Shown here: piece by piece, positions 43,279 to 59,882 of the stretch
How the letters are laid out: each line of letters begins with the position of its first letter
Position numbering within the stretch: the stretch's first letter is position 1
IMG/VR virus record: IMGVR_UViG_3300024503_000015
Coordinates: 124,001-188,000 of that record
Strand: one strand, 5' to 3'
Length of the DNA stretch: 64,000 nt
Notes under the pieces: generated by a model
What the model was told of the DNA's origin: nothing
What the model saw: the letters and a program-made list of their open reading frames with translations, nothing else
Databases searched by the model: none
Translations under genes and position numbers: made by a program

Positions 43279-43572
43279 TTAGTTAATTAGCATTCTGATC
43301 AAGCCAACTGTGTCGATAGTGGTTAGCAAGATATAGTTGGCTAGCATACCAAATGATTTTCTAGTATAAGCGGCCCACGCATACATCGCACAGCCGCTAA
43401 TCCATACAGGATACAGAGCAAGCAATGGCGGATTAGGTACAGTAACGGCCATAGTAATACTACAGCCAATACTAACAGCCCAGGCAAGTAACTCAACAAT
43501 AAATCGAAATGGATGACTATTCCAGTCATCCTTGATCCATTGTATAGTTGGCCCAAAAATAGCGTCTATCAT
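43279..43572 (-). CDS. Small membrane protein, 97 aa
   Basis: Three hydrophobic helices. Confidence 0.6.
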   Translation of the reverse strand: MIDAIFGPTIQWIKDDWNSHPFRFIVELLAWAVSIGCSITMAVTVPNPPLLALYPVWISGCAMYAWAAYTRKSFGMLANYILLTTIDTVGLIRMLIN

Positions 43573-43829
43573 TTGTCTTTGCCAACAGTAACGATAATTG
43601 TTTCTAAATCATCGAAATCACTGAATACATCGTTCCAGTTGCCTTTGTGTGCAATACTGATTGCTTTGTTAATTAGTGCAGGTTTGATTTCTAATTCTTC
43701 TGCTACTGCCTTAACTGTTTCTTTTAAGCCTTCTGTCAGACTTTCAATTTCATATTTGACTTGAACGCCTTCGTTAATTAGTCGCTCTAGTTTGGCCTTT
43801 TCTTCTGGTCCATAGGTTCTATTGCCCAT
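43569..43829 (-). CDS. Small dsDNA-binding protein (T4 DsbA/GapR-like)
   Basis: Size and helical pattern (EKAKLERLINEG...LKETVKAVAEELEIKPALINKAISIAHK) recall T4 DsbA. Confidence 0.55.
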   Translation of the reverse strand: MGNRTYGPEEKAKLERLINEGVQVKYEIESLTEGLKETVKAVAEELEIKPALINKAISIAHKGNWNDVFSDFDDLETIIVTVGKDK

Positions 43830-43853
43830 GATATCTCCTTAGTAATAAGTTTA

Positions 43854-43882
43854 ATTATATATGTTTATTTGATCAGAGTCAA
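43854..43882 (-). promoter_or_regulatory. sigma70 promoter for the dsbA-like/polymerase unit
   Basis: TTGACT-17 nt-TATAAT. Confidence 0.8.
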
Positions 43883-43902: not shown

Positions 43903-43928
43903 AAAAAAAGCGGCCGAAGCCGCTTTTT
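43903..43928 (-). terminator. Rho-independent terminator
   Basis: AAAAAGCGGC-TTCG-GCCGC-TTTTTTT on the minus strand (C(UUCG)G loop); bidirectional. Confidence 0.92.
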
Positions 43929-43941
43929 AAGTGTTAGTATT

Positions 43942-45720
43942 TTACTTTGCTGGAGCCGCAGGTGCTGCCGCAGGAGCCGCAGGTTGTTGTCCGCCTGCTG
44001 CCTTAGCCTTTTTAAGTTTGTCTAACTTGGAAATTACAACATCTAGACGTTTTTGGACATCTGCTGGTAAGCCTGCTTTGATTGCAGGATCTTGTCCATA
44101 TTGATCTAGAACTTTCAAATGCTTCTGTAGTTCTGCTAGATCTTTTGGATCCATTTCAATGTCACCGCCGCTAAATGCTTTCCATAGTGCGCCTAGTGCC
44201 AATGCCCCACCAACAGCGGCAGTTGCAATAGCCGCTTTTGGATTCTTTAGTACACCAAGTGCCTTTGATCCTGCGCCTTTGACAAAGTCCATGGCACGTT
44301 GTCCCCAACTTGGTTTTGGAGTAATGTCTCTGAATGGAACATCGATGACGTTTGGATTAGCACCACCTGGTGTAGATAGTGCCGGTAGTTTGCCGCCAGG
44401 ACCAGGTAGTGCTGGCACAGGTGCTTCACTTAGATAATCTCTTGTAATAGCAATTTGTTCTGCTTCGCTAAAGTATTTGATATTTTTCATAACAAACGCT
44501 CTTGCTTCGTTTTCAGTCATTGCTAATACATCTTCTTCAGTTACACTTTCAGAAATTTTGTACTTAGTAACGATTGCTTCGATAGCAGTTAATGATTGTG
44601 TTAACTGACTACGTGCAACGATATTTTTACCGTCTGCCAATAGTGTAGATAGTTCAGGAGTAACTTTACCAGTTTCTGGTTTGCCTGCCATCTTTTCAAA
44701 TGCTTTAATACCAGCAACAGTTTTAGGACCCATCTTACCATCGATTGGACCAGGGTCAACACCTAATGCTTTTAGTTGTTCTTGAATTTTCTGAATTGCA
44801 GGATCTGCACCAGCAGTCTTCTTATCTTGTGCAGTCTTATCTTGTGCAGTCTTGTCTTGAGATGCTTTAGTATCAGCGGCAACTTTATCTGCTTCTGCAC
44901 TTGCGGCATCTAAGTCTTTATCCATCTTTGCATCGTATTTTGCTTTTTCGGCTGCTTCAACATCTGCAACAGTTTTCTTAGCATCATCGATTGCTTTACG
45001 TACTTCTGGATCATCTCCTAAAGTTTCTAATTCGTCAATTAACGCATTAATTTGATCTGCCACTGCCTTGGCTTCTGGACTTAGTTGCTCTTGCATTGGT
45101 ACATCACCAACTACGTCTTGGAATTCTCTCATCAATGATTCAAAGATACTTCCTTCACCAACTTTTAATCCACCAAGTTTTGGAGCATTAGCAGTCATGC
45201 CTGGCATCTTAAGTCCAGTTCCGCTACTTGCTGTTCCGGTATCTGATCCACCAGTAATAGATTGTAACTTTTTAACCAAGTCCGCTAATTGCGGAAGTTT
45301 TTCTGCTTTAATTTCGGCAGTCTGGCGATCTTTATTAACTTTGTCACTAGTACCTTTAACTGCGGTATCGTGTTCGCCTTTGTCGTCGCCACGGAACATA
45401 CGTCCTAGTGCTGTAGATGTTTTTGCGTTTTGTGGAACTAAACCTAGATCTGCAAGTGTTTTATCTGCGCTTGATGTTGCAGTTGCGGCAATACTGTATT
45501 TGCCACCCATGCTGTTTGGCTGTCCTTGCTTGCCAACAAAGTAACCGCTAACAGGATCATACAAACCTGGTAGTTTGTGTTTCCATGCTAGGTCATTAAG
45601 GATCTCTGCACGTTCTTGCTCGTCTGATTTACCAGCAACTGCGGCTTCAACGTCTTTGATTGTGATAGCCTCTGCAAGTACTACAGTATCCAATTTGTTT
45701 AGAATTGATCTAATATCCAT
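43942..45720 (-). CDS. Probable capsid-internal/ejection protein with peptidoglycan-binding domain
   Basis: IQEQLKALGVDPGPIDGKMGPKTVAGIKAFEK is a PG_binding_1 signature; hydrophobic AAIATAAVGGALALGALW; late-like promoter upstream. Confidence 0.7.
   Translation of the reverse strand: MDIRSILNKLDTVVLAEAITIKDVEAAVAGKSDEQERAEILNDLAWKHKLPGLYDPVSGYFVGKQGQPNSMGGKYSIAATATSSADKTLADLGLVPQNAKTSTALGRMFRGDDKGEHDTAVKGTSDKVNKDRQTAEIKAEKLPQLADLVKKLQSITGGSDTGTASSGTGLKMPGMTANAPKLGGLKVGEGSIFESLMREFQDVVGDVPMQEQLSPEAKAVADQINALIDELETLGDDPEVRKAIDDAKKTVADVEAAEKAKYDAKMDKDLDAASAEADKVAADTKASQDKTAQDKTAQDKKTAGADPAIQKIQEQLKALGVDPGPIDGKMGPKTVAGIKAFEKMAGKPETGKVTPELSTLLADGKNIVARSQLTQSLTAIEAIVTKYKISESVTEEDVLAMTENEARAFVMKNIKYFSEAEQIAITRDYLSEAPVPALPGPGGKLPALSTPGGANPNVIDVPFRDITPKPSWGQRAMDFVKGAGSKALGVLKNPKAAIATAAVGGALALGALWKAFSGGDIEMDPKDLAELQKHLKVLDQYGQDPAIKAGLPADVQKRLDVVISKLDKLKKAKAAGGQQPAAPAAAPAAPAK
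44821..44861 (+). repeat. 15-bp coding tandem repeat (QDKTA), about 2.7 copies
   Basis: CTTATCTTGTGCAGT twice plus a degenerate third copy. Confidence 0.8.
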
Positions 45721-45746
45721 TTGTTTGTCCCCAAAATCTTATTAAG

Positions 45747-45754
45747 TATTTATC
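45747..45754 (-). promoter_or_regulatory. Late-like promoter GATAAATA
   Basis: 26 nt before the ATG at 45720. Confidence 0.6.
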
Positions 45755-45755
45755 A

Positions 45756-45840
45756 GTGCTCACTTTAAATCGTCAGGGTAGCGAATCCGTTGATTAGCCC
45801 AGCAGCCGGGCACATAACCCCAAACGGTCCTAGGGTATGT
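45756..45840 (-). ncRNA. Candidate pseudoknotted structured RNA
   Basis: GC-rich intergenic stretch; P1 ACAUACCCUA/UGGGGUUAUGU, P2 GCCCGG/CUGGGC, loop CCGUU complementary to downstream AACGG. Confidence 0.45.
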
Positions 45841-45842
45841 TC

Positions 45843-45941
45843 TTACAATTCATAAGGAATTCCGGCTAATCCGCATCCAAAGCGAGCTAACCCTTCTACA
45901 ATGTCATTAAACAGGGCTGTAAGGGTTTCTCGGACGGTCAT
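45843..45941 (-). CDS. Micro-ORF, 32 aa (MTVRETLTALFNDIVEGLARFGCGLAGIPYEL)
   Basis: Translated by hand; amphipathic helix; overlaps the 24 aa ORF in another frame. Confidence 0.4.
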   Translation of the reverse strand: MTVRETLTALFNDIVEGLARFGCGLAGIPYEL

Positions 45942-45981
45942 AGCCATCTTCCTCTGGGTAAACTGGATATTCGTTTTCCAT
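45907..45981 (-). CDS. Micro-ORF, 24 aa (MENEYPVYPEEDGYDRPRNPYSPV)
   Basis: ATG overlaps the dps stop (TAATG), suggesting translational coupling. Confidence 0.5.
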   Translation of the reverse strand: MENEYPVYPEEDGYDRPRNPYSPV

Positions 45982-46415
45982 TATTTTAGAGTTGCTCGCA
46001 ACATCCATGAATGTTTGCGATGAGCATCTTGACGATCTGCTAGGAAATTAGCAAGACCAAATTCATTGTTTGTTTCTGCAATTTTGTACACTAGGCCAAA
46101 TAAGTTAGCCATTTTATCAGAGTCTTCTAATAAAATTTGTGTCATAGATAGTGCATCTGGAATCTCTGTTTCATCATCAATTTTAGTAAGCATAGTGAAA
46201 CGTTCAAAACTACCAGGAGTGTAACTACCACTCTTGCGAATATTTTCTGCAAAAGTATCTATACTTCCATATACTTCTTCGTAGATGTTACCAAATAGTT
46301 CATGAAATTCTGCAAAATCAGGTCCTTCTACGTTCCAGTGAAAGTAGTGTGCCTTTAGATAAAAACTAAATTCTGATGCGAATACTATTTTAAGTGCTTT
46401 TGCTAATTCTTCCAT
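45981..46415 (-). CDS. dps: Dps/ferritin-like protein
   Basis: KAHYFHWNVEG, FHELF, IDTFAENIR ferroxidase motif, KHSWML. Confidence 0.92.
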   Translation of the reverse strand: MEELAKALKIVFASEFSFYLKAHYFHWNVEGPDFAEFHELFGNIYEEVYGSIDTFAENIRKSGSYTPGSFERFTMLTKIDDETEIPDALSMTQILLEDSDKMANLFGLVYKIAETNNEFGLANFLADRQDAHRKHSWMLRATLK

Positions 46416-46649
46416 TTATGCCACCTGTGCTACTGCGTATACGGCTGTGACTAACATAGTTTTTAAATTTATGTCGTCTGCCTCTTCTTCTAATTTATCT
46501 GTTCTGACTAGGTCTAGCATTAATTCTCTAAACTCGTCTTCGCCTATTTGTCCTTGCTGACGTGCTTCACATATCTGCAATGCCACTGCGGCACGTTCAG
46601 CCGCCCATGGGCGACCACATTGTGTTAACATCTGCAACTGTTCTATCAT
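46416..46649 (-). CDS. Hypothetical protein, 77 aa
   Basis: Co-oriented, abutting neighbours. Confidence 0.55.
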   Translation of the reverse strand: MIEQLQMLTQCGRPWAAERAAVALQICEARQQGQIGEDEFRELMLDLVRTDKLEEEADDINLKTMLVTAVYAVAQVA

Positions 46650-47035
46650 TAGAATCTCCCAAGAACTGCACTAGCGGCTTTATCCGCTTGTGTAGCCATT
46701 AATTTCTTTTTAATTTCGCAGTAAGTTTCGCTACCCTGCTTTTCTGTACTGCGTTTATAAAAGTCATCTACAGTTTCCTGCATAGGTTTAACTAACTTAA
46801 GAACGTCCTGTTGACGCCAACCTTTGCTTTCACTATAAAGTTGAAACCATTCTAAATTATCTTTGATAATTTTAACCTGTGGTGCGTGTGCTTGTTTACA
46901 ATCTAATTGTGCTACACTTTGACGCACGTCTATAATACGTGCTGATTGATTAGGATCGCTGAAACTAGGAATCCAACTCTTAACAGTAGCGCAACCTGTT
47001 AATGATATTGCTAATGCTAAGACAAGGGCTCTCAT
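46649..47035 (-). CDS. Lipoprotein
   Basis: Signal MRALVLALAISLTG-C lipobox. Confidence 0.7.
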   Translation of the reverse strand: MRALVLALAISLTGCATVKSWIPSFSDPNQSARIIDVRQSVAQLDCKQAHAPQVKIIKDNLEWFQLYSESKGWRQQDVLKLVKPMQETVDDFYKRSTEKQGSETYCEIKKKLMATQADKAASAVLGRF

Positions 47036-47907
47036 TTTCCATCCTTGACACAGTTATCAACAGTCTTACCGCCTTTCTGTTTGGTACCCATACGTTTGTA
47101 ACCATCCCAGCAAGCCTTACCATCGACACCTTTTTGCTTTTCTTCTGCTAATGTAAGGTAGTCTAAGAAAGATTTTTTAGTTTCCATAGTTGCTGGTTGT
47201 TGCTGTTGTACTACGTGTGTGGCAGCACCGTCAGGAACAGATGCTGTATTAGTTACATTCTTGTTAGCATCTTGTTGACGTCTAACTTTTGCAACACCTA
47301 AATCGTATTCGGCATCACTGGCACCTGTTTCCTTGCCAGTTTTGTCATAGGTCTTAACAACATTTAATGGACCGTTCATATACTTTACAGTAATATTGCC
47401 AGTGACTAAATCGTGTTCCTGACTATAGCCGTTAAACATTGGACTAGAATATTTGATTGCTTTACCTGCTTTGTCGTAGGTAAATGAACCAAACCCGCTA
47501 TCGTGTACTCTAGTACCGTCTTGCTTTACTGTAAGTTTCTCACCGCCTTCTAAATCGTAACGACCTGGTTTAGAAAAATCGCCCTGTGGAAATGCAGGAG
47601 CATTTGGAATTTGTAGATTGGGTTTAAAACCCGGCTCCCCAGGTCTGCCTGCTTCTTCTAGATCGCTGTCTTCTTTTTTATTTGCAGTTTTAATATTATA
47701 CATCTTAGCCACTGCTTTTTCATCATACGGTCTAAAGTCGCTGAGTTTTTCTTTTGCGGCATCAGCGGCAGACGCAACTTTGTCAGCAACTGTTTTTAAT
47801 GTATTGTTTTCCTGCACAATAGACACGAAACGGCGCATGTCATTTGCGCCTTCTACTCTACGACTAGATGCTTTATCTAGTGCTTGTAAAATTTGTTTCA
47901 TGTCCAT
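47032..47907 (-). CDS. Probable capsid-internal protein, modular
   Basis: xxE-type junctions (VQENN, LEEAG, LAEEK); C-terminal CWDGYKRMGTKQKGGKTVDNCV module. Confidence 0.55.
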   Translation of the reverse strand: MDMKQILQALDKASSRRVEGANDMRRFVSIVQENNTLKTVADKVASAADAAKEKLSDFRPYDEKAVAKMYNIKTANKKEDSDLEEAGRPGEPGFKPNLQIPNAPAFPQGDFSKPGRYDLEGGEKLTVKQDGTRVHDSGFGSFTYDKAGKAIKYSSPMFNGYSQEHDLVTGNITVKYMNGPLNVVKTYDKTGKETGASDAEYDLGVAKVRRQQDANKNVTNTASVPDGAATHVVQQQQPATMETKKSFLDYLTLAEEKQKGVDGKACWDGYKRMGTKQKGGKTVDNCVKDGK

Positions 47908-47911
47908 GATA

Positions 47912-49327
47912 TTATAGGCCTGATAAGAATTTCAAACGAGATAAGTCAGTAGATTCTTTAACTGTTTCTTTTTTCTTATCTGCTTTGCCGCCCATTTCGT
48001 CTTTGCCTAAACGACCAGCAACTACATCACCTTTGGTTACTTTGTCATATGGTTTAGCATTGTTGGCTAAGTTACCATCGCCCTTTTTCTTTTCAGCAAC
48101 AACTTTTCTAACAATAGACTTAACTAGGTTAGATTCTTGTACTGCTGGCGTAGGAGCAGTTGTACCACCTTCGGCTTCTAATTTCTTTCTAAGAGCACTA
48201 ATAGTTCTTGCTAAGTTTGTCTTATCGGCACCTGTAGCAGTTTTGTATTGTTCTTCGTATTTTGCGAGTGCTTTTGCAGTTGGGCTATCTGCTTCAGCAC
48301 CTTCTTTAAATGCTGGATTTGTAGGACCAGGAGTCTTTTCGCTCCACTCTTTACCCTTGTTTGGACCAGAAGTTACTTTTGGATACTTGCCAGTCTTTGG
48401 ATCTTTCTTAGGAGCGGCTGTAGCACCATCTGGTGGGCTCATTACTTGACCTTCGTCAGTTTTCTTTTTCTTTTCTGGAAGACCTTTATGCTTTGTACTA
48501 GCAAAGTCTTTGGCATCTTTGTCTTTCATGCCTTTAGCAACTTTAGCAACTTCCTTACTGGCTGGCTTTTCGCCTTTCTTTGCGGCGTGTACCATGCCCA
48601 TAAATTTTTGTTGTGCTTTGCTTACAGCCTTTTCGACTACTTGTGTAAGGGCTTCCTTAATCATCTTGTCTTTTTCTTTCTTGTTCTTGGCGTCTTTTTC
48701 AGCCTTGGCAATTTTTTCTGCGGCTTCGTCGATTTCATCCTTAACACGGATGCTGGCCACAGTCCAACCTGGATTGTCGCGTTTCATACGATCACGTACT
48801 TCGCCTTGGCTTTCGCCTTCGTCGGCAACAGTAGTAACACCACGAGTTTTGTTATCTTTTTCAAGTTTAACAAAGTATTGTTTCTTTTCTGATTTATCAA
48901 CTTGACCTTTCTTTTTGTCAGTTGCACGTACACCAGACGCTTCTTTAACAGCACCTTCTAACAAGGATGCTAATTTTTGTTCATATGTAGTCATTTCGTC
49001 AATTTTCCTTTCTTCGTCATCCATGTCAGACACTGGCTCTTCGCTTGGTAGCTCTTGTTCAGCATCACCTGTAATGTCGTCGATGTTGGATGCGTTGCTG
49101 CCATCGCCGAACTTAACTTGGTACTCCATATAGTGATATACACTATCTAAGTAATCTGCAGATTTAGTAATTTTAGCCTGTACCCAACCTTCTAAATCTT
49201 GTCCGTCTTGAATCATTTGGAACAATTTCATAGAGTACTTTGCGGCTCTATATAGTTCTGAACGTGCCATAGCCCCTTCGTGGTCGTCCACTGGTCCTGG
49301 CATAACTGGTCTCATCTGGTCGTGCAT
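47912..49327 (-). CDS. Probable capsid-internal polyprotein, Lys-rich
   Basis: Modules separated by IDEM, LLEG, VKEA, IDEA, IKEA, TDEG, FKEG, VQES, VKES; late promoter upstream. Confidence 0.6.
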   Translation of the reverse strand: MHDQMRPVMPGPVDDHEGAMARSELYRAAKYSMKLFQMIQDGQDLEGWVQAKITKSADYLDSVYHYMEYQVKFGDGSNASNIDDITGDAEQELPSEEPVSDMDDEERKIDEMTTYEQKLASLLEGAVKEASGVRATDKKKGQVDKSEKKQYFVKLEKDNKTRGVTTVADEGESQGEVRDRMKRDNPGWTVASIRVKDEIDEAAEKIAKAEKDAKNKKEKDKMIKEALTQVVEKAVSKAQQKFMGMVHAAKKGEKPASKEVAKVAKGMKDKDAKDFASTKHKGLPEKKKKTDEGQVMSPPDGATAAPKKDPKTGKYPKVTSGPNKGKEWSEKTPGPTNPAFKEGAEADSPTAKALAKYEEQYKTATGADKTNLARTISALRKKLEAEGGTTAPTPAVQESNLVKSIVRKVVAEKKKGDGNLANNAKPYDKVTKGDVVAGRLGKDEMGGKADKKKETVKESTDLSRLKFLSGL

Positions 49328-49348
49328 GGTTAAAATCTCCTGGTGTTG

Positions 49349-49356
49349 TATTTATC
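49349..49356 (-). promoter_or_regulatory. Late-like promoter GATAAATA
   Basis: Overlaps the CGA-TAA stop of the upstream gene, same arrangement as 12563. Confidence 0.6.
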
Positions 49357-50011
49357 GTTTTGCTATACTGCCGCCTGTTAACAGATTAGCCTTCATATCT
49401 AGGGCATTTTTAGCAGTACCGTCTTTATTTTTAGGTGTTTTTCCGGCTTTATTTTTGTATACAGGACCCACACTAACCATACCTGCACTAGTGCCTCCCG
49501 GTGTTGCAGTTTCGTCAAACTTATCGATTCCACGACTCTGCATTCCGCCCTTCTTACGTTTAGCGGCTAATTCTTCTAAACCGTGACGTACTTGCTCTAA
49601 ATTCTGTTCTAAACCCATGAACATGCCGCCTTTGGCTAACTTAGTAATTTGATGCCAAGTTGCTAGGTCATCGCTTTCTGCCATACGTGCTAATTCTTGT
49701 AACTGTTTACGTGTTTGCAAAATGCGTCCTTTTAACGTCATAGGATTTGCTTTATTGTGACTGTGAATCATAGGATCCATAGGATCATCTGTAGCGGCAA
49801 TAGGTGCTTCTAAGGTAAGTTGATCTGCAACAGTTTCGCTCATCTGTGCCATTTGTACAGCCTGCGCGGCCAATCTTGCAGGAATACCTTCTTTAACAAG
49901 TTTATCCTGTGCTTGTTGTTCGCTTAGTCCTTGTGCTAATAATGCCTTGGCACGTTTAGCCAAAGCCATCATATCAATAACACCTTCGTTTATAATGTCT
50001 ATCAATCTCAT
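49352..50011 (-). CDS. Probable capsid-internal protein
   Basis: N-terminus MRLIDIINEG; internal LTLEA and FDETATPGG. Confidence 0.55.
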   Translation of the reverse strand: MRLIDIINEGVIDMMALAKRAKALLAQGLSEQQAQDKLVKEGIPARLAAQAVQMAQMSETVADQLTLEAPIAATDDPMDPMIHSHNKANPMTLKGRILQTRKQLQELARMAESDDLATWHQITKLAKGGMFMGLEQNLEQVRHGLEELAAKRKKGGMQSRGIDKFDETATPGGTSAGMVSVGPVYKNKAGKTPKNKDGTAKNALDMKANLLTGGSIAKR

Positions 50012-51753
50012 TTCTTTTTTCCTTGACGCATATTAATTTGCCAGTGTGCTAATTGTTTTTTACGTGGACTAGCAGAATCGCTACTGCGTATCTTTTTTAA
50101 CTGTGCTATGCTCATGCCTTTAGTGATGCCGTGACGTTTACTATCACCTTTATCTTGTGGATTTTTTCCATCGGCAAAGTTTTCATCTACATTAAATGTC
50201 GGATCAACTTTTTGACGCGGCATATTCTTAGGCCGCTTTGGATCAACCGGGTCAATGTCTGTGGTATCAAGGCCCAACTTTTTCAAAGCCGCAATATATT
50301 TGTGCTCTTCTTCTTCACTGCCAAAAGATACAATAGTACTAGGAGGCCCTTTACCAAAATCTTTATTTGATAAATTTTTTAAGTTGGCAATATTCTTACC
50401 TAACTTGTACCAATCATACACATCACTTACATCAACTCTAACAGTGCCTCTAGGCATTGTAGGTTTAATTTCAGGACCTCTTGGTTTTTCATTAGGGTGC
50501 TGGTCTTCTTCTGCGTGTTTAAAATATTGTACTTGACGTTCACGTTTCTCTGCACCGGCGCGAGTTGGATACTTACCTAAGTTCTTATTACCATGTTTGC
50601 TTTTTAATTCGTAACCGCCTTTAACTTTAACAATATGTTCGTTAAACTGTTCTGGATTCATTTTACCCCAGTAACGTAGCAATACTCCAGCAAGAGCATT
50701 GGCTTCGTTTTCGTCTGGACTGCCAGTTGCACCATCTAATTCTCTTGCTTCGTTTTGTTTGCGATGCACTAATTCGTGTGCTAGTGTTCGCATAATATCC
50801 ATTTGATGTCTATCTTTAACAGATACAACTATGTCTTGTGTTTCAGGATCAAAGTATCCAAGTGCAGTAGTCTTTGTATCACCTACTAATTTAATACGTG
50901 GTGCTTGTTCTATTTCTAAAAGTTTGATAGCCCATAATGCAAAGTCTTTGATACGTTGCTTTTTATCTGGAGTCCATGCTTCCATCAATCCGCCGCCGTC
51001 ACCGCCGTCTCCCGCAGGCACACTACCTACACCACTGTAGCCTGCATCGGTACCATATAGTCCGTAAGGACCTGGTCCATATAACGCACCGTATTTGTTT
51101 CTGCGTTTTTTCTTACGACCTTCGTCTACATCTTTGTCACCACTAGTGGCAATTAATTTTCCTTGACTTCTATCTAGACTTTTTAACTGCTGTGGTTCGT
51201 GTTCTTCTTCACCTTGTCCCACACGTTTAGCACGTTTAAGTCCATCTAATATTACTTGTAAACTATCTTCGTCTGCTTGATATTTGATACCAATACCGCC
51301 AGCGGCTTCCCAAGCACTGATATTACTACCTCTGTCGTCAATTAATACGTTAGGCATTCCGCTAGGATTTCTAGCGTACTTGGCTTTGTTTGAAACAATG
51401 TAAATGTTGTCTGGCAGTTGATTTAAGTGTTCATCGATCCAAATACGTTTGTATTTTTCACTGCCTTCGTGGTCGCCGCGTAATGGGCTAGAACAAATAT
51501 TGTAGCCACCGGCCACATCAACTACAATATCAATTAGTTTGTCTGCTGTAGGAAACTTTGGTAGACGTGCAAAAAAGTCTGTTCCTACCATTTTGTTTAA
51601 TGTAGGATCAGTCTTCGCTGGTGGAATGTCTCTGTAGTTTCCGCTTTTAATGCCAGCAAGTTTAGCATACTCTGTGAAAAAGTCTGCAAGAACTCCGTCC
51701 ATGTCTACATAGACTTCCATGCCTTGGGGTAATTCTAAATCGCTTGCTCTCAT
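50008..51753 (-). CDS. Multi-module protein: HAD 5'(3')-nucleotidase + HExxH domain + small modules
   Basis: YVDMDGVLADF and LIDDRGSNISAWEAAGGIGI (NT5C-type HAD); RTLAHELVH. Confidence 0.75.
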   Translation of the reverse strand: MRASDLELPQGMEVYVDMDGVLADFFTEYAKLAGIKSGNYRDIPPAKTDPTLNKMVGTDFFARLPKFPTADKLIDIVVDVAGGYNICSSPLRGDHEGSEKYKRIWIDEHLNQLPDNIYIVSNKAKYARNPSGMPNVLIDDRGSNISAWEAAGGIGIKYQADEDSLQVILDGLKRAKRVGQGEEEHEPQQLKSLDRSQGKLIATSGDKDVDEGRKKKRRNKYGALYGPGPYGLYGTDAGYSGVGSVPAGDGGDGGGLMEAWTPDKKQRIKDFALWAIKLLEIEQAPRIKLVGDTKTTALGYFDPETQDIVVSVKDRHQMDIMRTLAHELVHRKQNEARELDGATGSPDENEANALAGVLLRYWGKMNPEQFNEHIVKVKGGYELKSKHGNKNLGKYPTRAGAEKRERQVQYFKHAEEDQHPNEKPRGPEIKPTMPRGTVRVDVSDVYDWYKLGKNIANLKNLSNKDFGKGPPSTIVSFGSEEEEHKYIAALKKLGLDTTDIDPVDPKRPKNMPRQKVDPTFNVDENFADGKNPQDKGDSKRHGITKGMSIAQLKKIRSSDSASPRKKQLAHWQINMRQGKKK

Positions 51754-52037
51754 TTTTTATTTACCGGTTTTTCGCCTGTCATGTAAGGTAAACTAAACCA
51801 TAACTGAAACCACTCAGGTGTTCCAGGTTTAATGTTTTGTTCTCTCTGTATTCTGCCTTTATCACTGCCAGTAACACTGATGTTACTGCCCTGATACTCG
51901 TGTAGTCTTGCGGCATGACCTAAGCCTGCAAGATACTGCATAGATTTAATTTCGTATATAGGATCAGAAGGATCAAGTAAGCAGTCGTCTGGACTGTCTT
52001 GATTTAAATTTTCTGTACTGATTCTATATTGTTTCAT
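51750..52037 (-). CDS. Hypothetical protein, 95 aa
   Basis: Co-oriented in the late cluster. Confidence 0.55.
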   Translation of the reverse strand: MKQYRISTENLNQDSPDDCLLDPSDPIYEIKSMQYLAGLGHAARLHEYQGSNISVTGSDKGRIQREQNIKPGTPEWFQLWFSLPYMTGEKPVNKK

Positions 52038-52040
52038 TTA

Positions 52041-53012
52041 TTATGAAACCTTAACAACAGTAAATCCTGCTTTTACGTAGTGATCGTGAGCATAATTCTT
52101 TGCGTGTTCGCGACCTTTAGTAGTAGTTACACGGGGTGTTCTTTCAACTTCATTTCCGTCCTTGTCAATAAGAGTAAAACGGAATGAATACTCTTCTGGA
52201 TCCGGTCCATTAACATATTCATCATCTTCGCGTTCACGACGTCCAAAGCCTGTGCGACTAGAATCGTAATCGCGTTGATACGCATCGTAACTACCGTAAC
52301 GGCCTTCTTCTAATTCTGACATTTTCATAGCATCTTTTTCCTTCTTAGGTTCTTTTTCTTTTTTAGGCTCTTCTTTTTTCTTAGGTTCTTCTTTTTTCTT
52401 AGAATCTTTTTTCTTTGCTTTTTCCTTCGCCTTTTCTTCATAGGGCATCAAGTACTCGGCAACTAAGTCAAAGAATGGTTTACCCATAACAGGTGTTTCT
52501 GAACTTACGCCAGCGGCATCGCTAAATGCTTGTCTGTCGCCTTTGGCTACTGCTTCACGTAAACTTGTAGCAGAGCTCTTACGTAATTCTAATTTTGCTT
52601 CTTCTATACTGTCGTGGAACAGTCTAATTTCTGGAAAATTGTATTCGCCGTGCGGACCAGACTTTCCATTATAATCTTGTACAGTAGGAACTACCCATGC
52701 TTCGTCAGTAACGATGATTAATTTTACTGCACCGTGTTTCTGATATACATAACTGGCTAATGTTAACCAACTTGTTTCGGCAACAATATGTCCTGTAACA
52801 TCAGGCCAAATAACTTTCATACATTCTGTTTTTACATTGTATGGCAGTGGGTCTTTTGGTCCTACAGTACTTTCATTAGTACCAACGTACCATACATCTT
52901 TAGTAGCGGCAGTTTCCCAAGCGGCTTTATGTCCTTTGTGCGGAGGATTGAATCGACCAAATATAATGGCTACTTCACTTGTTTTATTTTCAAATAAATT
53001 TCTTAATCTCAT
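52041..53012 (-). CDS. HxGH cytidylyl/adenylyltransferase-like protein (NMNAT/PPAT fold)
   Basis: IFGRFNPPHKGH, DPLPYNVK, SSATSLREA; N-terminus MRLRNLFE. Confidence 0.82.
   Translation of the reverse strand: MRLRNLFENKTSEVAIIFGRFNPPHKGHKAAWETAATKDVWYVGTNESTVGPKDPLPYNVKTECMKVIWPDVTGHIVAETSWLTLASYVYQKHGAVKLIIVTDEAWVVPTVQDYNGKSGPHGEYNFPEIRLFHDSIEEAKLELRKSSATSLREAVAKGDRQAFSDAAGVSSETPVMGKPFFDLVAEYLMPYEEKAKEKAKKKDSKKKEEPKKKEEPKKEKEPKKEKDAMKMSELEEGRYGSYDAYQRDYDSSRTGFGRREREDDEYVNGPDPEEYSFRFTLIDKDGNEVERTPRVTTTKGREHAKNYAHDHYVKAGFTVVKVS
52341..52410 (-). repeat. Coding low-complexity repeat KKKEEP/KKEKEP
   Basis: Translation SKKKEEPKKKEEPKKEKEPKKEK. Confidence 0.7.
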
Positions 53013-53013
53013 A

Positions 53014-54162
53014 TTATTCCCCAGGAGTCCACTGGTCTCTGTTTACTAACTTTACATTACCGAATTTCTTTTCAGGGCCAGCATAGCGTACACGACCTTC
53101 TCCGTTTGTGTCCCAGATATCTCCTTGCTCGCCTTCAACCTGTGCAAGTATTTGGTTTTTCATTGATTGTATTTGTTTAACTAGAGAAAATATAGCATCT
53201 ACAGCGTTAGGATGGGCTTCTATTTTAGCCTGTATTTTTTCTTGTTTTCCTGCACTAACTTTTGACTTTTCCAACCATGCGTTAAAATTCTGTAAACCTA
53301 AACTGCTTAACTGTTTAGCTCTTGCTGTTTGATTTACATAGGTGTAGAATATATTCTTAAGGTCACTTAACCCAGCAGTATCGGACAAGAATCCTTCGAT
53401 TTGTTCTGCGTGTTGTTGTGCATAACCTTCAATGTTATCAATCATCTTAGTATCGATACTAACAGATTTTTTATTGTATATCGGACCTTGTACAATTAAT
53501 TTAGGATTAGCATTAAATTGATCAAAATCGTCTAACGGTTCTTGTTCACTGTCATCCATTCCAAATTGTGGGAAATAAGCATGACCGACAACCATTACAT
53601 CTGCATAAGCAATACGCTTACCTAAATCACTGTCGCCTCTGACATGATAACAAGTTTGTGATTTAGGATTTGGACAGAATGTGTATACTCCGTCTTTTAA
53701 ATCGGGCCTGTTTAAAAATAATGCGTCAGCATAGACAAAGCCTACAAAATCTTTTGGAGTTGCCGCATCAAATGCTGGATATAAATTTGCAAACTTGGCG
53801 GCAAATTCTTCACGTTGTTTACGCTCTTCTTCTGTCTTAGGTGTACCGCTCTTGTTAGCAATAAAATCTTTTACTGCTTCTGGATTATCTGTCTTAGCAC
53901 CACGTGCCCAACCGTTGTGTCCTGCTAGAATTAATGGTCCATTCTTTGTTTCACGACCCCAATAGATTTGAGGATTACCGTCCCATTTCATGCGAATGCT
54001 TTCAGAACCTTCTTGTGTAGCGATTTCTTTAACGTGGTCTAATGCTTCGATGGTACCGTCGATGCCGTAGAAGAAAACTAGATCTTCGAGATGGTTGAAT
54101 GCACGGCCCAGTTTCTTTTTAACTGTTTCTGTGGATTCAACAAATAGTTCTCTTAATCTCAT
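53014..54162 (-). CDS. Ligase-type covalent nucleotidyltransferase-like protein (KxDG)
   Basis: NHLEDL and MKWDGNP resemble motif I of RNA/DNA ligases; N-terminus MRLRELFVE. Confidence 0.55.
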   Translation of the reverse strand: MRLRELFVESTETVKKKLGRAFNHLEDLVFFYGIDGTIEALDHVKEIATQEGSESIRMKWDGNPQIYWGRETKNGPLILAGHNGWARGAKTDNPEAVKDFIANKSGTPKTEEERKQREEFAAKFANLYPAFDAATPKDFVGFVYADALFLNRPDLKDGVYTFCPNPKSQTCYHVRGDSDLGKRIAYADVMVVGHAYFPQFGMDDSEQEPLDDFDQFNANPKLIVQGPIYNKKSVSIDTKMIDNIEGYAQQHAEQIEGFLSDTAGLSDLKNIFYTYVNQTARAKQLSSLGLQNFNAWLEKSKVSAGKQEKIQAKIEAHPNAVDAIFSLVKQIQSMKNQILAQVEGEQGDIWDTNGEGRVRYAGPEKKFGNVKLVNRDQWTPGE

Positions 54163-55013
54163 TCTTCGCCCCTTGACTGCTTGGGACCTTTACGTTGTTT
54201 CCATTTTTTATCTGTACTGCACCAGTAACGTCCATAAGTACCTTCTACTACGCCTTGCATCCATGAGAACCATTCGGCAGAACCTTCTTTAACATCTTCA
54301 GGCTTTTTGCCTTCGTTGCCAGGCCAGTTCTCATCGGCTAGTGCGTGTTGAATTTTTGGATTTTGTTCTTTACCTGGTAGTGCGGCAATAATTCTTTCTA
54401 CATTACCTAAGTCAGCGGCAGTAGCATGAGCACCGATTAAAATTTTAGCAACTTCGTCTGCATTGTGAGAAACAAAGTCTGCCTTCTTTCCATTTTCATC
54501 TCGGGCAAACAGCCCTTGGAATCCGCTCCACATTAGTCCGTAAGGATATCTTTGGTTACGAGTTTCTTTAGCAATACTGGAAAGTAGTATGTGCTTATGT
54601 AAACCTTTGAATGGAGTATTTTCAATGCTATAATCGTGTTGATGAAATTTACTAACAGAGCCAGCATCTTTAACAAACATAATATCTGCTTGTGCAAACT
54701 TATCGCCGTTAGGAACTTTAATGTGTACATTGATGCCAGTTAGTGCAGATTCGGTGCCTCTATCTTGAAAGTATGTTTTTAATTTTTGTCTTGCTTCTTT
54801 GGCTGTCTTAACTTTAAAAAAGTCTAACATGGACTGCTCGTCGACCATTAAGTCCATGTCTCCAGAACTGGCTTTATGGCCGGCACTGCCAACAGGAATT
54901 AAATCAATGCCCTGCGGCATCATTGATTGCGCCTTGGCTAGTACTTCCTTGGCTTCATCCTTGCCAAATGGTTCTACATCAGGAAATACATTTCCACCTT
55001 CTAATAGGATCAT
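54159..55013 (-). CDS. Pol-beta superfamily nucleotidyltransferase
   Basis: PVGSAG...SSGDMDLMVD (GS + DxD) and a third Asp in QADIMF; N-terminus MILLEGG. Confidence 0.75.
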   Translation of the reverse strand: MILLEGGNVFPDVEPFGKDEAKEVLAKAQSMMPQGIDLIPVGSAGHKASSGDMDLMVDEQSMLDFFKVKTAKEARQKLKTYFQDRGTESALTGINVHIKVPNGDKFAQADIMFVKDAGSVSKFHQHDYSIENTPFKGLHKHILLSSIAKETRNQRYPYGLMWSGFQGLFARDENGKKADFVSHNADEVAKILIGAHATAADLGNVERIIAALPGKEQNPKIQHALADENWPGNEGKKPEDVKEGSAEWFSWMQGVVEGTYGRYWCSTDKKWKQRKGPKQSRGEE

Positions 55014-55354
55014 TCATCTCTCCCATCATAAACACCGTTTTCGATGTTATGTTTTTCTTCGTGGAACATTTTAACAGCCAAGTCCTGTACTTCTTCGGGA
55101 TCGAATAATACTTTTGGGTTTTGGGTGATTTTGAATTTATTGCAATAAACTGGTATGGCTTTATCGATGCAGGGCATAAATGACATTTCGTTGCACTTGC
55201 CGCCGGATTTCAACTTGCCTTTTAATTCAGCGATTACAGGATAAACTACCTTACGATAAAAACGTGGGTCGTTGTGCATAAAAAACTTTAAATCATCGAC
55301 GAAATCGACGTCTTTAAACTGTTCTGCTTGCTTATCTACATCATTTATTTTCAT
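55010..55354 (-). CDS. Hypothetical protein (start MKINDV)
   Basis: First gene after CATAAATA. Confidence 0.5.
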   Translation of the reverse strand: MKINDVDKQAEQFKDVDFVDDLKFFMHNDPRFYRKVVYPVIAELKGKLKSGGKCNEMSFMPCIDKAIPVYCNKFKITQNPKVLFDPEEVQDLAVKMFHEEKHNIENGVYDGRDE

Positions 55355-55407
55355 ATAATCACCATGTTCTGCATAGAGCCGCGGATATACATACTCCACT
55401 AATAGAG

Positions 55408-55415
55408 TATTTATG
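55408..55415 (-). promoter_or_regulatory. Late-like promoter CATAAATA
   Basis: Intergenic, heads the internal-protein cluster. Confidence 0.5.
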
Positions 55416-55431
55416 CTATTTTACAACTGTA

Positions 55432-56076
55432 TTAAATTTCGCTGATTAGGTACATTTCGTCCACTCTGCGTATCTTATTGCCCAGGAATAGTCTGCACAT
55501 TCCTAGGGTCTTTTCATTTGCGGCGTAAAAGTAGCCTTCGGAGTGGTATGTACGCTTTAGCAGTTTAATGCTGGGAATCTGCTCTGCCCATGCGTGGAAA
55601 CTTTCGCTAGAATCACGTAGAGGATTTACAGTTACTCTATACTTGTGCGTATACTTTTTAGATATAATACAGTTAGGGTTAGTTAATAGAAACTTCCTAA
55701 CTTTATCGTCTGCAGGTTTAGTTACTTCTTTAACATGTCCTAATAGTTGAACAGCATCTAATAAAGAATCACTGTTGGTGTAAATGCTTAATGTGTCGCT
55801 TTCTACACGCAACAAAAAATCAGTTTCTTTATTAAGTAAATCTACAAGTTTGTTTATGTAGATTACATCACTGACTGTAGCATATTTCTTACGCCAGGAT
55901 CTAAGTTGTACTCTACCATCCGGGACGGCTTCAATTTGATCACTAAGAATCTTGATTGAAGCCATTGCCCGAGCGATAGTTCTGCTACGAAACTCCGAAG
56001 CAAAAACATTTATTACACTAATCTTGTTGACATATTTGTCAAAAAACAATTTAGATGTTTGCTTGTACAGTTTCAT
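55432..56076 (-). CDS. Hypothetical protein (start MKLYKQ)
   Basis: Overlaps the clpA 3' end. Confidence 0.55.
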   Translation of the reverse strand: MKLYKQTSKLFFDKYVNKISVINVFASEFRSRTIARAMASIKILSDQIEAVPDGRVQLRSWRKKYATVSDVIYINKLVDLLNKETDFLLRVESDTLSIYTNSDSLLDAVQLLGHVKEVTKPADDKVRKFLLTNPNCIISKKYTHKYRVTVNPLRDSSESFHAWAEQIPSIKLLKRTYHSEGYFYAANEKTLGMCRLFLGNKIRRVDEMYLISEI

Positions 56077-58291: not shown

Positions 58292-58802
58292 TTAATTTCC
58301 TCTGTTTTTTCAGTGCTAAATCTAACTTTAACTTACTTACTCTTTTGGTAAAAGTAATGCCGTCTAAGTGGTCAATTTCATGTTGAATACACTTGGCGTC
58401 ATAACCACTTAATGTAATTGTACATTCTTTTGCTGTCTTGTCAAGATATTTTATTGTAATATTATTAAATCTGTTAATCTTTATGAACAAATTTGGAAAA
58501 CTCAAACAGCCTTCCTCGTCTATACACTCGTCGGATCCGCTGACAATTTCGGGATTAAACATGGCAAATGGTTCTTGCCCACTAGGTTTGACTACAACAA
58601 CTCTGCGATCAAATCCAACTTGATTAGCGGCAATGCCGATGCCACGGCCGCCTAGCATTATCTCGACCATGGCTTGTTCTATTTGGTTAGGATCGATGCC
58701 GCAATTAAAATCAAAGGGCTCTAATTTTGTATAGAGTATTGGGTCTGGATCTGTTCTAAGATAAAAATCTTTAGGTTCTGTAACGGTCTGAAAGTTGCTC
58801 AA
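58275..58802 (-). CDS. def: Peptide deformylase (start uncertain; TTG at 58802 proposed)
   Basis: [22 protein letters not shown]. Confidence 0.93.
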
Positions 58803-59595
58803 TTTGAATCTTATCTTCCGTGAATAGTATTTTGGGAATTGTAATTTGTACTTGTATAAACAAATTTCCTCTTTGATGATTGTGTGGACCGACTGGAAGT
58901 CCGTAACTATCACACTTAATCATTTGACTAGGTTGTATGCCTGCCGGAACTTTGATTTCTAATTCTTTGTCTTCTAATGTTTTAAAGCGGATTGTTTTTC
59001 CTAACATAGCATCAAACGCAGAAATTTCTACTTCTGCATATAAGTTCCTGCCATCACGTTTGAATCTTGGATGTGGAAGTTCAATAATTTGTGCTATTAC
59101 ATCGCCCCTAGGCATATTAGGAATGCTGTCGTCTCCTAATCCTCTAAAACGAATTGAGTCACCGTTTTGTACACCTGCAGGAATACTTAATTGTAGTGCC
59201 TGTTCTTTTCCACTAGGTAATCTGATACTGCCAGTAACTTCTTTGCCGACAAGTATTTCTTCTAAAGTCATTTCGACACGGATATTGATATTCCTGTTCT
59301 TTCTGGACTGCTGTCTAAAGCCAGCACCAAAGGGATTAGCACCAAACATGGCACCAAACAAATCATTCATGTCGTTCATATTGCCAGTATGAAAACTATA
59401 CTGTGGCATTGGGTTGTCGTATTGAGCTCGTTTTTGGTCATCACTAAGGGTGCGATATGCTTCTTCAATTTGTTGAAATTTAGAAGTATCGCCGCCTCTG
59501 TCAGGATGGTGCTTTGAAGCCAATTTACGATATGCTTTTTTGATATCGTCTTGGCTAGCAGATTTTGAAACTCCTAGTATTGAATAATAATCCAT
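58771..59595 (-). CDS. dnaJ: DnaJ-class co-chaperone without Zn finger (CbpA/type II-like)
   Basis: J-domain with HPD, G/F-rich linker, C-terminal DnaJ domains; no CxxCxGxG. Confidence 0.92.
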
Positions 59596-59606
59596 AGTGT
59601 ATGATG

Positions 59607-59640
59607 AAAAAAGGTATAGTAGTAATTATACTATACCTTT
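59607..59640 (-). terminator. 12-bp inverted repeat/terminator of the lysis unit, overlapping the -10 box
   Basis: AAAGGTATAGTA-7 nt-TACTATACCTTT followed by T-run on the minus strand. Confidence 0.7.
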
Positions 59641-59653
59641 CTTAGGATGTCAA
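59625..59653 (-). promoter_or_regulatory. Consensus sigma70 promoter of dnaJ-def-clpA
   Basis: TTGACA-17 nt-TATAAT exact. Confidence 0.85.
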
Positions 59654-59657
59654 GAAT

Positions 59658-59870
59658 TTATTTCTTAGTCGCTGTATCTGGCTTAGTACCTTCTACTTTG
59701 GTACCTTCGTGCTTTTTGTGTACTTTGACTGTTTTACAAACTTCTTTTTCCTTACCAGTTTTTGCGTCCTTTTGAGTTACGCAAGCCTTTTTAGTTTTTG
59801 GTGCTTCTTCAGCAGCCATTGTTGGCATTGCAAATGCCGCTGTTAATAATAATGCTAAGAATGTTTTCAT
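59658..59870 (-). CDS. Small secreted Lys-rich protein
   Basis: Signal peptide MKTFLALLLTAAFAMPTMA; Cys pair. Confidence 0.65.
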   Translation of the reverse strand: MKTFLALLLTAAFAMPTMAAEEAPKTKKACVTQKDAKTGKEKEVCKTVKVHKKHEGTKVEGTKPDTATKK

Positions 59871-59882
59871 TTGTCTCTCCTT

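Follow-up and report, generated by a model that had tools for sequence, protein, structure and literature searches.

A block of minus-strand genes in an uncultivated riverine phage raises the question of why proteins with unrelated functions begin with a similar short sequence ending in glutamate (Glu), and why its longest open reading frames (ORFs) consist of modules joined at similar Glu sites. The block spans positions 43905-55415 of a stretch of 64,000 nucleotides, here called the window, which represents bases 124001-188000 of the IMG/VR virus record IMGVR_UViG_3300024503_000015 (270,181 bp, linear, about 71% complete according to CheckV). It contains thirteen genes at 43942-55354, all of them on the minus strand. 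We propose that the N-terminal leaders and the internal hydrophobic-x-Glu junctions mark targeting to the prohead and cleavage by a gp21-like protease. This is the best explanation of the sequence data, and we assign it a probability of about 0.7. It is based on the match to the targeting sequence and the cleavage site of T4, the corresponding site in the capsid protein, an intact protease, late expression, and homologs that were found in virions.

The phage record, with a G+C content of 39.5% over its 270 kb, was found in numerous metagenomes and metatranscriptomes from rivers. Identity to the jumbo phages Sinorhizobium Phosso, Vibrio 2.275.O, Pseudomonas PA5oct, and Agrobacterium Atu_ph07 is 47-70% for the DNA polymerase and the major capsid protein, and the sequence places the present phage as a jumbo phage of the T4 superfamily. 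A DNA search of the block for near-identity against GenBank phages yielded no match.

The genes of the block are listed below from 55354 downward; a slash marks the boundary behind a Glu.

55010-55354, minus strand: 114-aa small protein starting MKINDVDKQAE; orthologs begin with the leader-like MKIQDLFE/N or MLLRELDE/K
54159-55013, minus strand: 284-aa predicted minimal family-X (Pol lambda/beta-like) nucleotidyltransferase; starts MILLE/G, no convincing leader
53014-54162, minus strand: 382-aa DUF6267 protein; leader MRLRELFVE/S (residues 1-9, Glu codon 54136-54138), then a putative ligase-like nucleotidyltransferase
52041-53012, minus strand: 323-aa protein; leader MRLRNLFE/N, predicted HxGH (NMNAT/cytidylyltransferase-like) domain to about residue 191
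51750-52037, minus strand: 95-aa protein; relatives have a 66-75-aa form beginning MNIDDLKRLAGINE/F
50008-51753, minus strand: 581-aa putative polyprotein; NT5C 5'(3')-deoxyribonucleotidase first, then serial modules
49352-50011, minus strand: 219-aa protein; leader MRLIDIINE/G, three modules split by TLE/A at 68 and FDE/T at 167
47912-49327, minus strand: 471-aa protein; conserved acidic N-domain 1-124 (isoelectric point, pI, 4.3), LLE/G, then variable basic modules
47032-47907, minus strand: 291-aa protein; second-type propeptide MDMKQILQALD...FVSIVQE/N (33 aa), conserved Cys-containing C-terminal module
45981-47035, minus strand: 128-aa lipoprotein (LTGC lipobox), 77-aa acidic protein and 144-aa ferritin/Dps-like protein, all leaderless
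43942-45720, minus strand: 592-aa protein; propeptide MDIRSILNKLDTVVLAE/A, PG_binding_1 domain (residues 307-357), hydrophobic segment near the C-terminus

The start of the 114-aa gene was placed at ATG 55354 because a GGTGA ribosome-binding site is found there and the alternative GTG 55399 is too near the promoter.

A separable leader on unrelated proteins

For a pattern that was picked post hoc, with the data already seen, M[RK][LA][RKIA][ENDQ][LFI] begins six annotated proteins of the genome and a seventh at an internal ATG, compared with 0.036 predicted from the composition. Outside the block, the pattern-matching leaders MRLREITE/N, MRAKEFIDE/S, and MRAKEFIKE/A were found near head, terminase, or late genes. 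A 188-aa protein with the near-pattern start MKSFNEYLTE/S has a match in PHROG, to a family that bears the annotation virion structural protein. In addition, a 79-aa protein in the gp67/68 slot begins MILRELF, and a 363-aa protein in the scaffold slot begins MLDALKSLFE/N. A loose N-terminal expression, [LIVFM]xE within 12 residues, was dropped, as it matches 21% of all proteins.

An earlier note on this DNA had listed five N-termini ending in Glu. Four of them, MRLRNLFE, MRLRELFVE, MRLIDIINE, and the MDIR type, were retained in our analysis. The fifth, MILLE of the 284-aa protein, was rejected as a leader, because MILLEGGNVF is conserved within the folded PolX-like domain, where GGNVF forms a strand, and distant homologs begin MSKNVIF.

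Relatives of the locus were collected by an IMG/VR scan with the 382-aa protein, which retrieved 255 related stretches; 80 of the 255 were used, with flanks of 10 kb. In these 80 loci, the leader was present on 332 of 1614 genes (249 unique; about 20%), and the 332 leader-bearing proteins represent 97 architectures in 30 homology components, which puts the leader on at least 30 cargo families that are unrelated to each other. In 172 of the 249 unique leaders, residue 8 or 9 was the first Glu. P3, in the usual numbering around a cleavage site, was Leu or Ile in 76% and Leu, Ile, Val, or Phe in 87%, while P1' was Ala, Gly, or Ser in 46%. The common leader has 8-9 residues and the consensus M-R/K-L/I/A-x-E-L/F/I-h-x-E.

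The orthologs of the 382-aa protein are 63-100% identical, and their leaders differ (MRLRELFVE, MRANEFLREAE, MRAFEFLKEAE, and MRFLEFRTITEA; 50 orthologs). M1, R2, an acidic position 5, a hydrophobic position 6, and the final Glu are constant. Between the leader and the invariant KKLGRAFNHLEDLVFF lies a linker whose length varies. In the structure model of the 382-aa protein (predicted local distance difference test, pLDDT, 88), residues 1-19 are the sole part of low confidence, and the leader has a pLDDT below 50. The sequences thus characterize the leader as a separable add-on, the pattern of which is kept while its sequence varies. In agreement with this, the homologs in cyanophage S-CAM4 are devoid of it. 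In some orthologs (loci L032, L033, L028, L037, L038, and L051), an extra module of about 33 aa, KWSxKYKxSINCSNPKGFSQKAHCAGRKK with conserved Cys, is located between leader and enzyme. This module was also found stand-alone and behind FNE/, and the C-terminal Cys-containing tails of the 291-aa and 284-aa proteins resemble it in style.

A second N-terminal class of about 33 aa, MDMK[KQ]ILQA.D...NDM[KR][KR]F.SI..E/[SNG], occurs on varied cargo, and the 592-aa protein bears a 17-aa MDIR variant of it. When a strict DNA pattern of the leader was applied to other phages, it was found at two genes in PA5oct and at none in T4 or S-SCSM1. The small number is partly due to the pattern itself, which covers neither the CGN codons for Arg nor leaders whose Glu is residue 8 or 10. 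On these counts, the expansion of the leader appears to be specific to this clade.

Leader ends and internal junctions are equivalent

Modules of the 581-, 471-, and 219-aa ORFs recur in relatives as stand-alone, leader-bearing genes, and the last Glu of the leader aligns with an internal xxE of the long ORFs of the window. For example, MRAKEFITE/NFADGK... (five different leaders were seen) aligns with FNVDE/NFADGK at residue 524 of the 581-aa ORF, MRAKDFTNE/GRKKKK...GPGPYGLYG with DVDE/GRKKKRR at residue 211, and MKINE/VNSP..., the start of the HExxH module, with GLME/AWTP at residue 258. Likewise, MKINELLTE/APIDFDP aligns with LTLE/APIAATDDP at residue 68 of the 219-aa ORF. FNE/ at residue 372 of the 581-aa ORF is a conserved junction behind which varying modules are found among the phages. 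The reverse case was observed in locus L047, where the mature 219-aa protein stands behind PLAE/G within a 474-aa ORF. The N-terminal part of that ORF consists of a leader, a peptidoglycan-binding-like sequence, and an M23 peptidase-like motif, the latter two judged by eye.

In the 581-aa ORF, the order is NT5C, VDE/G at 211, the basic GPGPYGLYG module, LME/A at 258, the HExxH zincin module, FNE/H at 372, a further module, AEE/D at 416, an HPNxxPRGPE module, VDE/N at 524, and the NFADGK module. The four junctions that had been predicted for this ORF in the earlier note, at 211, 258, 372, and 524, are all module boundaries in relatives. The predictions for the 471-aa ORF did not yield uniform results. 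LLE/G at 124 and VKE/A at 129 coincide with homology breakpoints, as do three sites absent from the note's list, IKE/A at 225, VVE/K at 232, and TDE/G at 292, whereas the predicted IDE/A, FKE/G, and VQE/S sites agree with the motif only. VVE/K at 232 and TDE/G at 292 bound the DUF3008 module of this protein. Module shuffling among homologs, which the note had proposed as a check, was observed, the modules being present in relatives either stand-alone or internally.

To quantify the junctions, 260 stand-alone leader proteins were taken and their mature N-termini mapped to longer ORFs. Of the 167 unique junction contexts, 84 had a P1 Glu, compared with 4-36 at the other positions within eight residues and a background Glu frequency of 6.5%; the 167 contexts share ancestry and are not phylogenetically independent. 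Contexts with a residue other than Glu at P1 were mostly one or two residues out of register. In a first run of the test, P3 was hydrophobic or Thr in 72 of 82 Glu junctions. Twenty distinct pentamers, otherwise unrelated, were found upstream of the NFADG module, and all 20 have Glu as their last residue. The same holds for 11 of 11 upstream contexts of the TATAG/SASAG module and, in three additional modules, for 3 of 3 contexts each. These per-module counts of differing upstream sequences would be difficult to account for if the boundary Glu were not under selection.

The motif [LIVF]xE[AGS] occurs 26 times in the block proteins versus 12.2 times in shuffles (z 4.4), and 264 versus 225 times in the remaining proteome, so that the enrichment over background expected in the earlier note was indeed found. 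In a genome-wide ranking of this enrichment, the 471-aa ORF was first and the 363-aa protein in the scaffold slot second. The scaffold of T4 is the multi-cut substrate of its protease. Taken together, these sequence comparisons make it very likely that both the leader and the hydrophobic-x-Glu junction are under selection.

The head module contains an intact protease and a matching capsid site

The head module of the phage encodes a gp20 portal, the 79-aa gp67/68-slot protein, an acidic 260-aa protein, a Peptidase_S77 (gp21-like) protease, and, in the scaffold (gp22) slot, the 363-aa coiled-coil protein; its capsid protein is of the gp23 type. The order is identical in PA5oct, and most of these proteins were detected in PA5oct virions by mass spectrometry. 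The protease, of 210 aa, matches Peptidase_S77 (E 6e-26) and PDB entry 5JBL (E 7e-14), is 30% identical to T4 gp21, and retains the catalytic His and Ser of the latter. The site LSE/S of the capsid protein aligns with the maturation site LTE/A of T4 gp23. The intact protease and the capsid site indicate that the enzyme and its likely specificity are both present.

In T4, gp21 cuts after L/I-X-E, the capsid-targeting sequence (CTS) has 10 aa, of which residues 8 and 10 govern processing, and Alt loses a propeptide of 7 aa; the internal proteins and Alt are ejected (PMC9026906). The internal proteins ipII and ipIII of T4 both begin MKTYQEFIAE. The T4 precedent cited in the earlier note, a leader of about 10 aa that ends in Glu and a gp21 protease that cuts after Glu, agrees with these data. 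Replacement of the P1 Glu by Asp abolishes cleavage in T4.

Homologs of block proteins are found in virions

In CsCl-purified virions of the T4-like cyanophage S-SCSM1, an NMNAT-like enzyme, a DUF3008 protein, and Lys-rich neighbours were detected by mass spectrometry, and similar detections were cited for S-CBWM1 and one more phage; the authors did not connect the presence of these proteins in virions with a targeting leader or with cleavage (PMC9602691). The S-SCSM1 NMNAT-like protein begins MKSFLQFLKE/AAE, a T4-like targeting sequence, and its gene clusters with those of Lys-rich virion proteins and the DUF3008 protein. Residues 234-290 of the 471-aa protein are 78% identical to residues 3-60 of the 69-aa DUF3008 virion protein of S-SCSM1. 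In PA5oct, gp333, a 73-aa protein encoded after the portal gene, begins MKINDIITE/G and carries a virion flag from electrospray ionization tandem mass spectrometry (ESI-MS/MS). The same flag is carried by a "putative DNA ligase", a MazG-like, and an FtsH-like protein of PA5oct (L095, 176918-178288). Either that preparation held non-structural proteins, or PA5oct also packages repair enzymes.

Evidence for late transcription of the block

The sequence ATAAATA is present in the window in 7 copies, compared with 25.8 expected (3.7-fold depleted). All 7 copies are intergenic, and 3 are in the block. Throughout the genome, 34 NATAAATA sites were found, nearly all of them on the coding strand 6-30 nt before the start codons of structural genes. 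The predicted signals of the block are as follows.

55408-55415, minus strand: late promoter P1 (CATAAATA), drives the genes from 55354 downward
49349-49356, minus strand: late promoter P2 (GATAAATA), ATG of the 471-aa gene 22 nt downstream
45747-45754, minus strand: late promoter P3 (GATAAATA), ATG of the 592-aa gene 27 nt downstream
43905-43928, minus strand: intrinsic terminator with a 10-bp stem and a T-run, closes the block

The promoters and the strong terminator described in the earlier note were therefore recovered, as three late promoters and, at 43928-43905, a terminator with a stem of 10 bp. A late sigma factor similar to gp55 is encoded in the genome (phrog_12791, E 6e-76). In three independent metatranscriptome runs, assembled contigs extend from 43938, 43940, or 43952 to 45726, 45727, or 45751, that is, from the terminator to promoter P3. 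These contigs have about twice the depth of neighbouring contigs, and no contig covers 43829-43937 in the three runs. The contigs of the 592-aa gene fit a discrete transcript; RNA libraries may include DNA carry-over. The three NATAAATA promoters, the gp55-like sigma factor, and the contig bounds all agree with late expression together with the head genes.

A non-coding spacer of 225 nt (window 45759-45955) lies between the Dps-like gene and promoter P3, and an Rfam scan of the block, including this spacer, gave no match. Contigs from two RNA libraries leave the window at 45913 into unrelated sequence (loose end ATAGCAAGGCCTGCTATAAAATTTTTAGTG), suggesting that a second strain, which has another insert at this position, occurs alongside. 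Past the terminator (43569-43882, minus strand), a sigma-70-type promoter, TTGACT-17-TATAAT (11/12), precedes the gene of an 86-aa protein. This protein has a borderline match, below the Pfam cut-off, to T4 DsbA, a late-transcription helper (E 1e-4).

The predicted cargo includes enzymes

The 382-aa protein contains K59-W60-D61-G62, a motif I KxDG that is invariant in 30 orthologs and the homolog of the T4-like cyanophage S-CAM4. When its model was compared using VIA-align, 41 of the top 42 rows were RNA or DNA ligases, with Z scores of only 4.6-6.2. The neighbours included the nucleotidyltransferase domains of T4 Rnl2, Trl1, REL1, LigIV, T4 Rnl1, and T4 DNA ligase. A Foldseek search of the model against the PDB yielded no match below E 0.1. 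The model suggests a ligase-like protein; this assignment is not proven.

The 284-aa protein matches Pol lambda in Foldseek (E 1e-6, probability 1.0, about 212 columns). It contains a GS...DxD motif and a third Asp, with G42, D52, D54, and D110 invariant, and it is devoid of an 8-kDa or fingers domain. As modelled, it has a minimal family-X polymerase fold, with a disordered C-terminal tail after VKE/G at 243 and VVE/G at 257. A tblastn search of phages with this protein found no match, and PDB sequence searches with four of the block enzymes yielded nothing significant. An Atlas structural hint of a likeness between the 382-aa and 284-aa proteins was not adopted, as profile-profile comparison revealed no relationship in sequence (probability 0.4) and the fold searches split them into ligase-like and PolX-like.

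The 323-aa protein contains FGRFNPPHKGH and matches PHROG cytidyltransferase families (E 4e-16 and 2e-13), with no Pfam match at E 0.01. From its sequence, it is classified as an HxGH nucleotidylyltransferase (NMNAT/cytidylyltransferase-like). Behind the HxGH domain come a Lys/Glu linker and LEE/G at 236, and a small module forms the C-terminus. Relatives have a hypervariable C-terminal part and total lengths of 192-558 aa. The genes for DUF6267 and the HxGH transferase adjoin in S-CAM4 (L009, 4031-5790), as they do in the window at 52041-54162. Moreover, Atlas clusters hold both the DUF6267 and the transferase Pfam families, and one holds DUF6267 together with a Cu/Zn superoxide dismutase domain; certain phages encode the two enzymes as a fusion. 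The adjacency and the shared clusters indicate that the two enzymes probably work together and share a pathway.

The 581-aa ORF matches an NT5C deoxyribonucleotidase and, weakly, a zincin (HExxH). In the unrelated Flavobacterium phage immuto (L010, 2159-6039), a 907-aa ORF with the annotation NMNAT (NadR) is found side by side with the ORFs of an NT5C nucleotidase and a hypothetical protein. These ORFs match pieces of the 581-aa ORF, so the association of the enzymes reaches past this clade. Many of the fragments predicted for the block are small and basic, with a pI of 9-11. The 592-aa protein, with its predicted domain and hydrophobic segment, is a candidate for envelope penetration or ejection.

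Neighbouring genes

Directly upstream of the block, at 56051-59595 on the minus strand, is a chaperone and quality-control cluster. It encodes a ClpA/B-type double-AAA+ ATPase of 746 aa (Clp_N, AAA, AAA_2, ClpB_D2-small), a peptide deformylase, and a DnaJ with J and C-terminal domains. A giant ORF on the plus strand (window 85-12567, genome 122483-136567) encodes 4160 aa in the window and 4694 aa in the genome. Other very large late ORFs comprise 3835, 3092, 2670, and 1901 aa, with NATAAATA just before the 3835-aa one; these very large ORFs presumably encode fibre or tail proteins. Outside the window, at genome positions 54255-60267, four tandem ORFs of about 490-520 aa have GGGxxG N-termini typical of FAD-binding enzymes, with numerous small ORFs (about 190-250 aa) on their flanks. 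This region was judged to be an auxiliary metabolic island by eye only.

A model for prohead cargo and its alternatives

We suggest that the block would be a late-transcribed, fast-evolving cargo region of this T4-superfamily jumbo phage. Most of its proteins would begin with a removable propeptide of 8-9 residues, or of 17-33 residues in the MDMK/MDIR type, while the 471-aa protein would use its acidic N-domain of 124 residues in place of a short propeptide. The propeptides would act like the capsid-targeting sequence of T4, drawing the proteins into the core of the assembling prohead, where a serine protease of the gp21 type would cleave hydrophobic-x-Glu sites behind the Glu. As the same site is found at every junction, a single leader could be enough to bring a series of modules into the capsid. 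The protease would free the modules as separate enzymes and small basic proteins, and the freed cargo would later exit the capsid with the DNA. That the products are injected and active in the host is plausible, and we regard the odds as about even.

Several points weigh against this model. No convincing leader was found on 5 of the 13 genes (those for the PolX-like protein, the 95-aa protein, the lipoprotein, the 77-aa protein, and the Dps-like protein); these five proteins are at most putative members of the cargo. In cyanophage S-CAM4, the homologs of the 382-aa protein and the adjacent transferase are without a leader, indicating that these enzymes are not always packaged. PA5oct gp213, the second strict leader match in that phage, was undetected by mass spectrometry. 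The hydrophobic-x-Glu motif is short and occurs about twice per 100 aa by chance, so single cuts cannot be assigned from the sequence alone. P5 Glu is mildly raised at internal junctions (33 of 167), and some junctions may therefore be recent fusions that keep leader remnants.

The proteins could be packaged and processed, as proposed above, and nevertheless serve mainly as a structural, DNA-condensing, or scaffold-like "inner body" and not as injected effectors. The small basic fragments (pI 9-11) resemble the DNA-associated internal proteins of T4, the 471-aa ORF shares its motif enrichment with the scaffold-slot protein, and the present sequence data do not address ejection. However, the predicted cargo includes folded enzymes (the ligase-like protein, the HxGH transferase, the nucleotidase, the zincin, and, in relatives, an M23 peptidase) as well as a protein with a peptidoglycan-binding domain, and neither these enzymes nor that protein has an obvious role in the capsid. 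In addition, the internal proteins and Alt of T4 are ejected (PMC9026906), and we consider a purely internal function unlikely. It is more improbable still that recombination at conserved 5' gene ends (start regions and ATGA overlaps) produced the shared N-termini and the junction Glu as side effects, with leader remnants left in uncleaved late cytoplasmic enzymes. The region is recombinogenic, as illustrated by the 97 architectures and the strain variant break at 45913, the two MRLR genes are identical over their first 12 nt, and the raised P5 Glu at internal junctions would be expected from such remnants. But the unrelated upstream contexts of a single module end in Glu in 20 of 20 cases, with a hydrophobic residue or Thr at P3 in 17 of 20, and the rest of the leader is missing at the junctions, where P5 is Glu in 20% of cases compared with 72% of the leaders. 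Leader residues differ between orthologs with the hydrophobic/Glu pattern kept, the same site is found at the maturation position of the capsid protein, and homologs were found in virions.

The junctions might also be cut by another protease, either the HExxH zincin of the block or the adjacent ClpA-like protein with a ClpP, and the leader might direct the proteins elsewhere, for example to degradation or export. A zincin-like module is indeed present at residues 259-372 of the 581-aa ORF, a ClpA/B-type ATPase is encoded directly upstream at 56051-58291, and a gene elsewhere in the genome (218872-219495) has, judged by eye, a ClpP-like N-terminus. Yet Leu/Ile-x-Glu fits the known specificity of gp21 and the phage's own capsid site, and the zincin is one shuffled cargo unit that is missing from many relatives with the same junction pattern. 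To our knowledge, Clp proteases make no site-specific cuts after Glu. Of the alternatives, this one is the least probable, and targeting to the prohead with cleavage by the gp21-like protease accounts best for the observations.

Significance of the proposed leader-marked cargo

Proteins injected with the phage DNA act ahead of phage gene expression, and they are prime candidates for counter-defence and host take-over; beyond the close relatives of T4, they are nearly unrecognisable from sequence. A rule that combines the leader with hydrophobic-x-Glu is simple and testable, and it flags hundreds of candidate cargo modules in uncultivated phages. It would extend the principle of the T4 targeting sequence to distant jumbo phages and apparently also to cyanophages, and it would explain the recurrent NMNAT-like enzymes in cyanophage virion proteomes. 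Polyprotein processing in the prohead is suggested as a way to multiply cargo diversity, and the natural leaders and linkers could be used in engineering protein delivery by T4-like capsids.

More tentatively, and with odds somewhat below even, a widespread freshwater clade of jumbo phages may use a combinatorial cargo "grammar", in which a leader plus a hydrophobic-x-Glu junction lets any module join the set that is loaded, released, and injected. If so, the delivered ligase-like, NMNAT-like, nucleotidase, zincin, and cell-wall enzymes would form an early toolkit for take-over, counter-defence, or DNA repair, and the same grammar could predict injected phage effectors straight from metagenomes.

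Comparison with known systems

The principle is known from T4, with its targeting sequence and gp21, and, in a different form, from phiKZ-like phages. In the literature searched, we found no description of the leader principle in this clade of jumbo phages or in cyanophages, nor of multi-module ORFs with junctions that are exchangeable for leader ends.

Viral polyproteins, such as those with picornavirus 3C sites, likewise combine several functional units in one ORF with short protease sites between them. This is an analogy only, as the protease family and the biology are unrelated, and the present case concerns accessory cargo in the prohead of a DNA phage.

The jumbo phages phiKZ, 201phi2-1, and SPN3US have a large protein cargo and many head proteins that are cut after Glu by a gp21-related protease (gp175/gp245). 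Some of their proteins are multiply cut, and long propeptides (more than 100 aa in SPN3US) are comparable to the N-domain of the 471-aa protein. The analogy to phiKZ gp175 that had been drawn in the earlier note does not extend to the site itself, however, because the phiKZ-like motif is S/A/G-x-E, whereas P3 here is Leu, Ile, Val, or Phe, mainly Leu or Ile as in T4, and the capsid protein, portal, and protease are of the T4 type (gp23/gp20/gp21). An assignment to the phiKZ-type inner-body class was rejected on these grounds, as both P3 and the head genes are T4-like. In the literature consulted on phiKZ-like phages, no modular equivalence of leaders and junctions was described.

The virion NMNAT-like proteins of S-SCSM1 and S-CBWM1 are similar in that the HxGH domain is shared with the 323-aa protein (S-SCSM1, BLASTP E 3e-11). 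The arrangement differs, as in S-SCSM1 the pieces are separate genes, while in the present phage DUF3008 lies within a longer ORF, with a boundary Glu at either end.

The greatest similarity is to IPI, IPII, and IPIII, which are internal proteins, and to Alt of T4. The layout of MKTYQEFIAE/A corresponds to that of MRAKEFIDE/S, MRLRELFVE/S, and MKSFNEYLTE/S in the present phage. Both systems have Leu or Ile at P3, Glu at P1, a protease of the gp21 family, late expression, and small basic products. In both, one leader is found on unrelated, fast-changing cargo, and a packaged enzyme, Alt, is known in T4. The phage described here, which is known from sequence alone, differs from T4 in having a second, longer propeptide class and the class with a 124-aa N-domain. 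Its cargo is also different, comprising the putative ligase-like and NMNAT-like proteins, the nucleotidase, the zincin, and the M23 peptidase. Lastly, each internal protein of T4 is encoded by a separate gene with its own CTS, whereas here dozens of leader-bearing genes per region are found together with multi-module ORFs, the junctions of which are exchangeable with leader ends.

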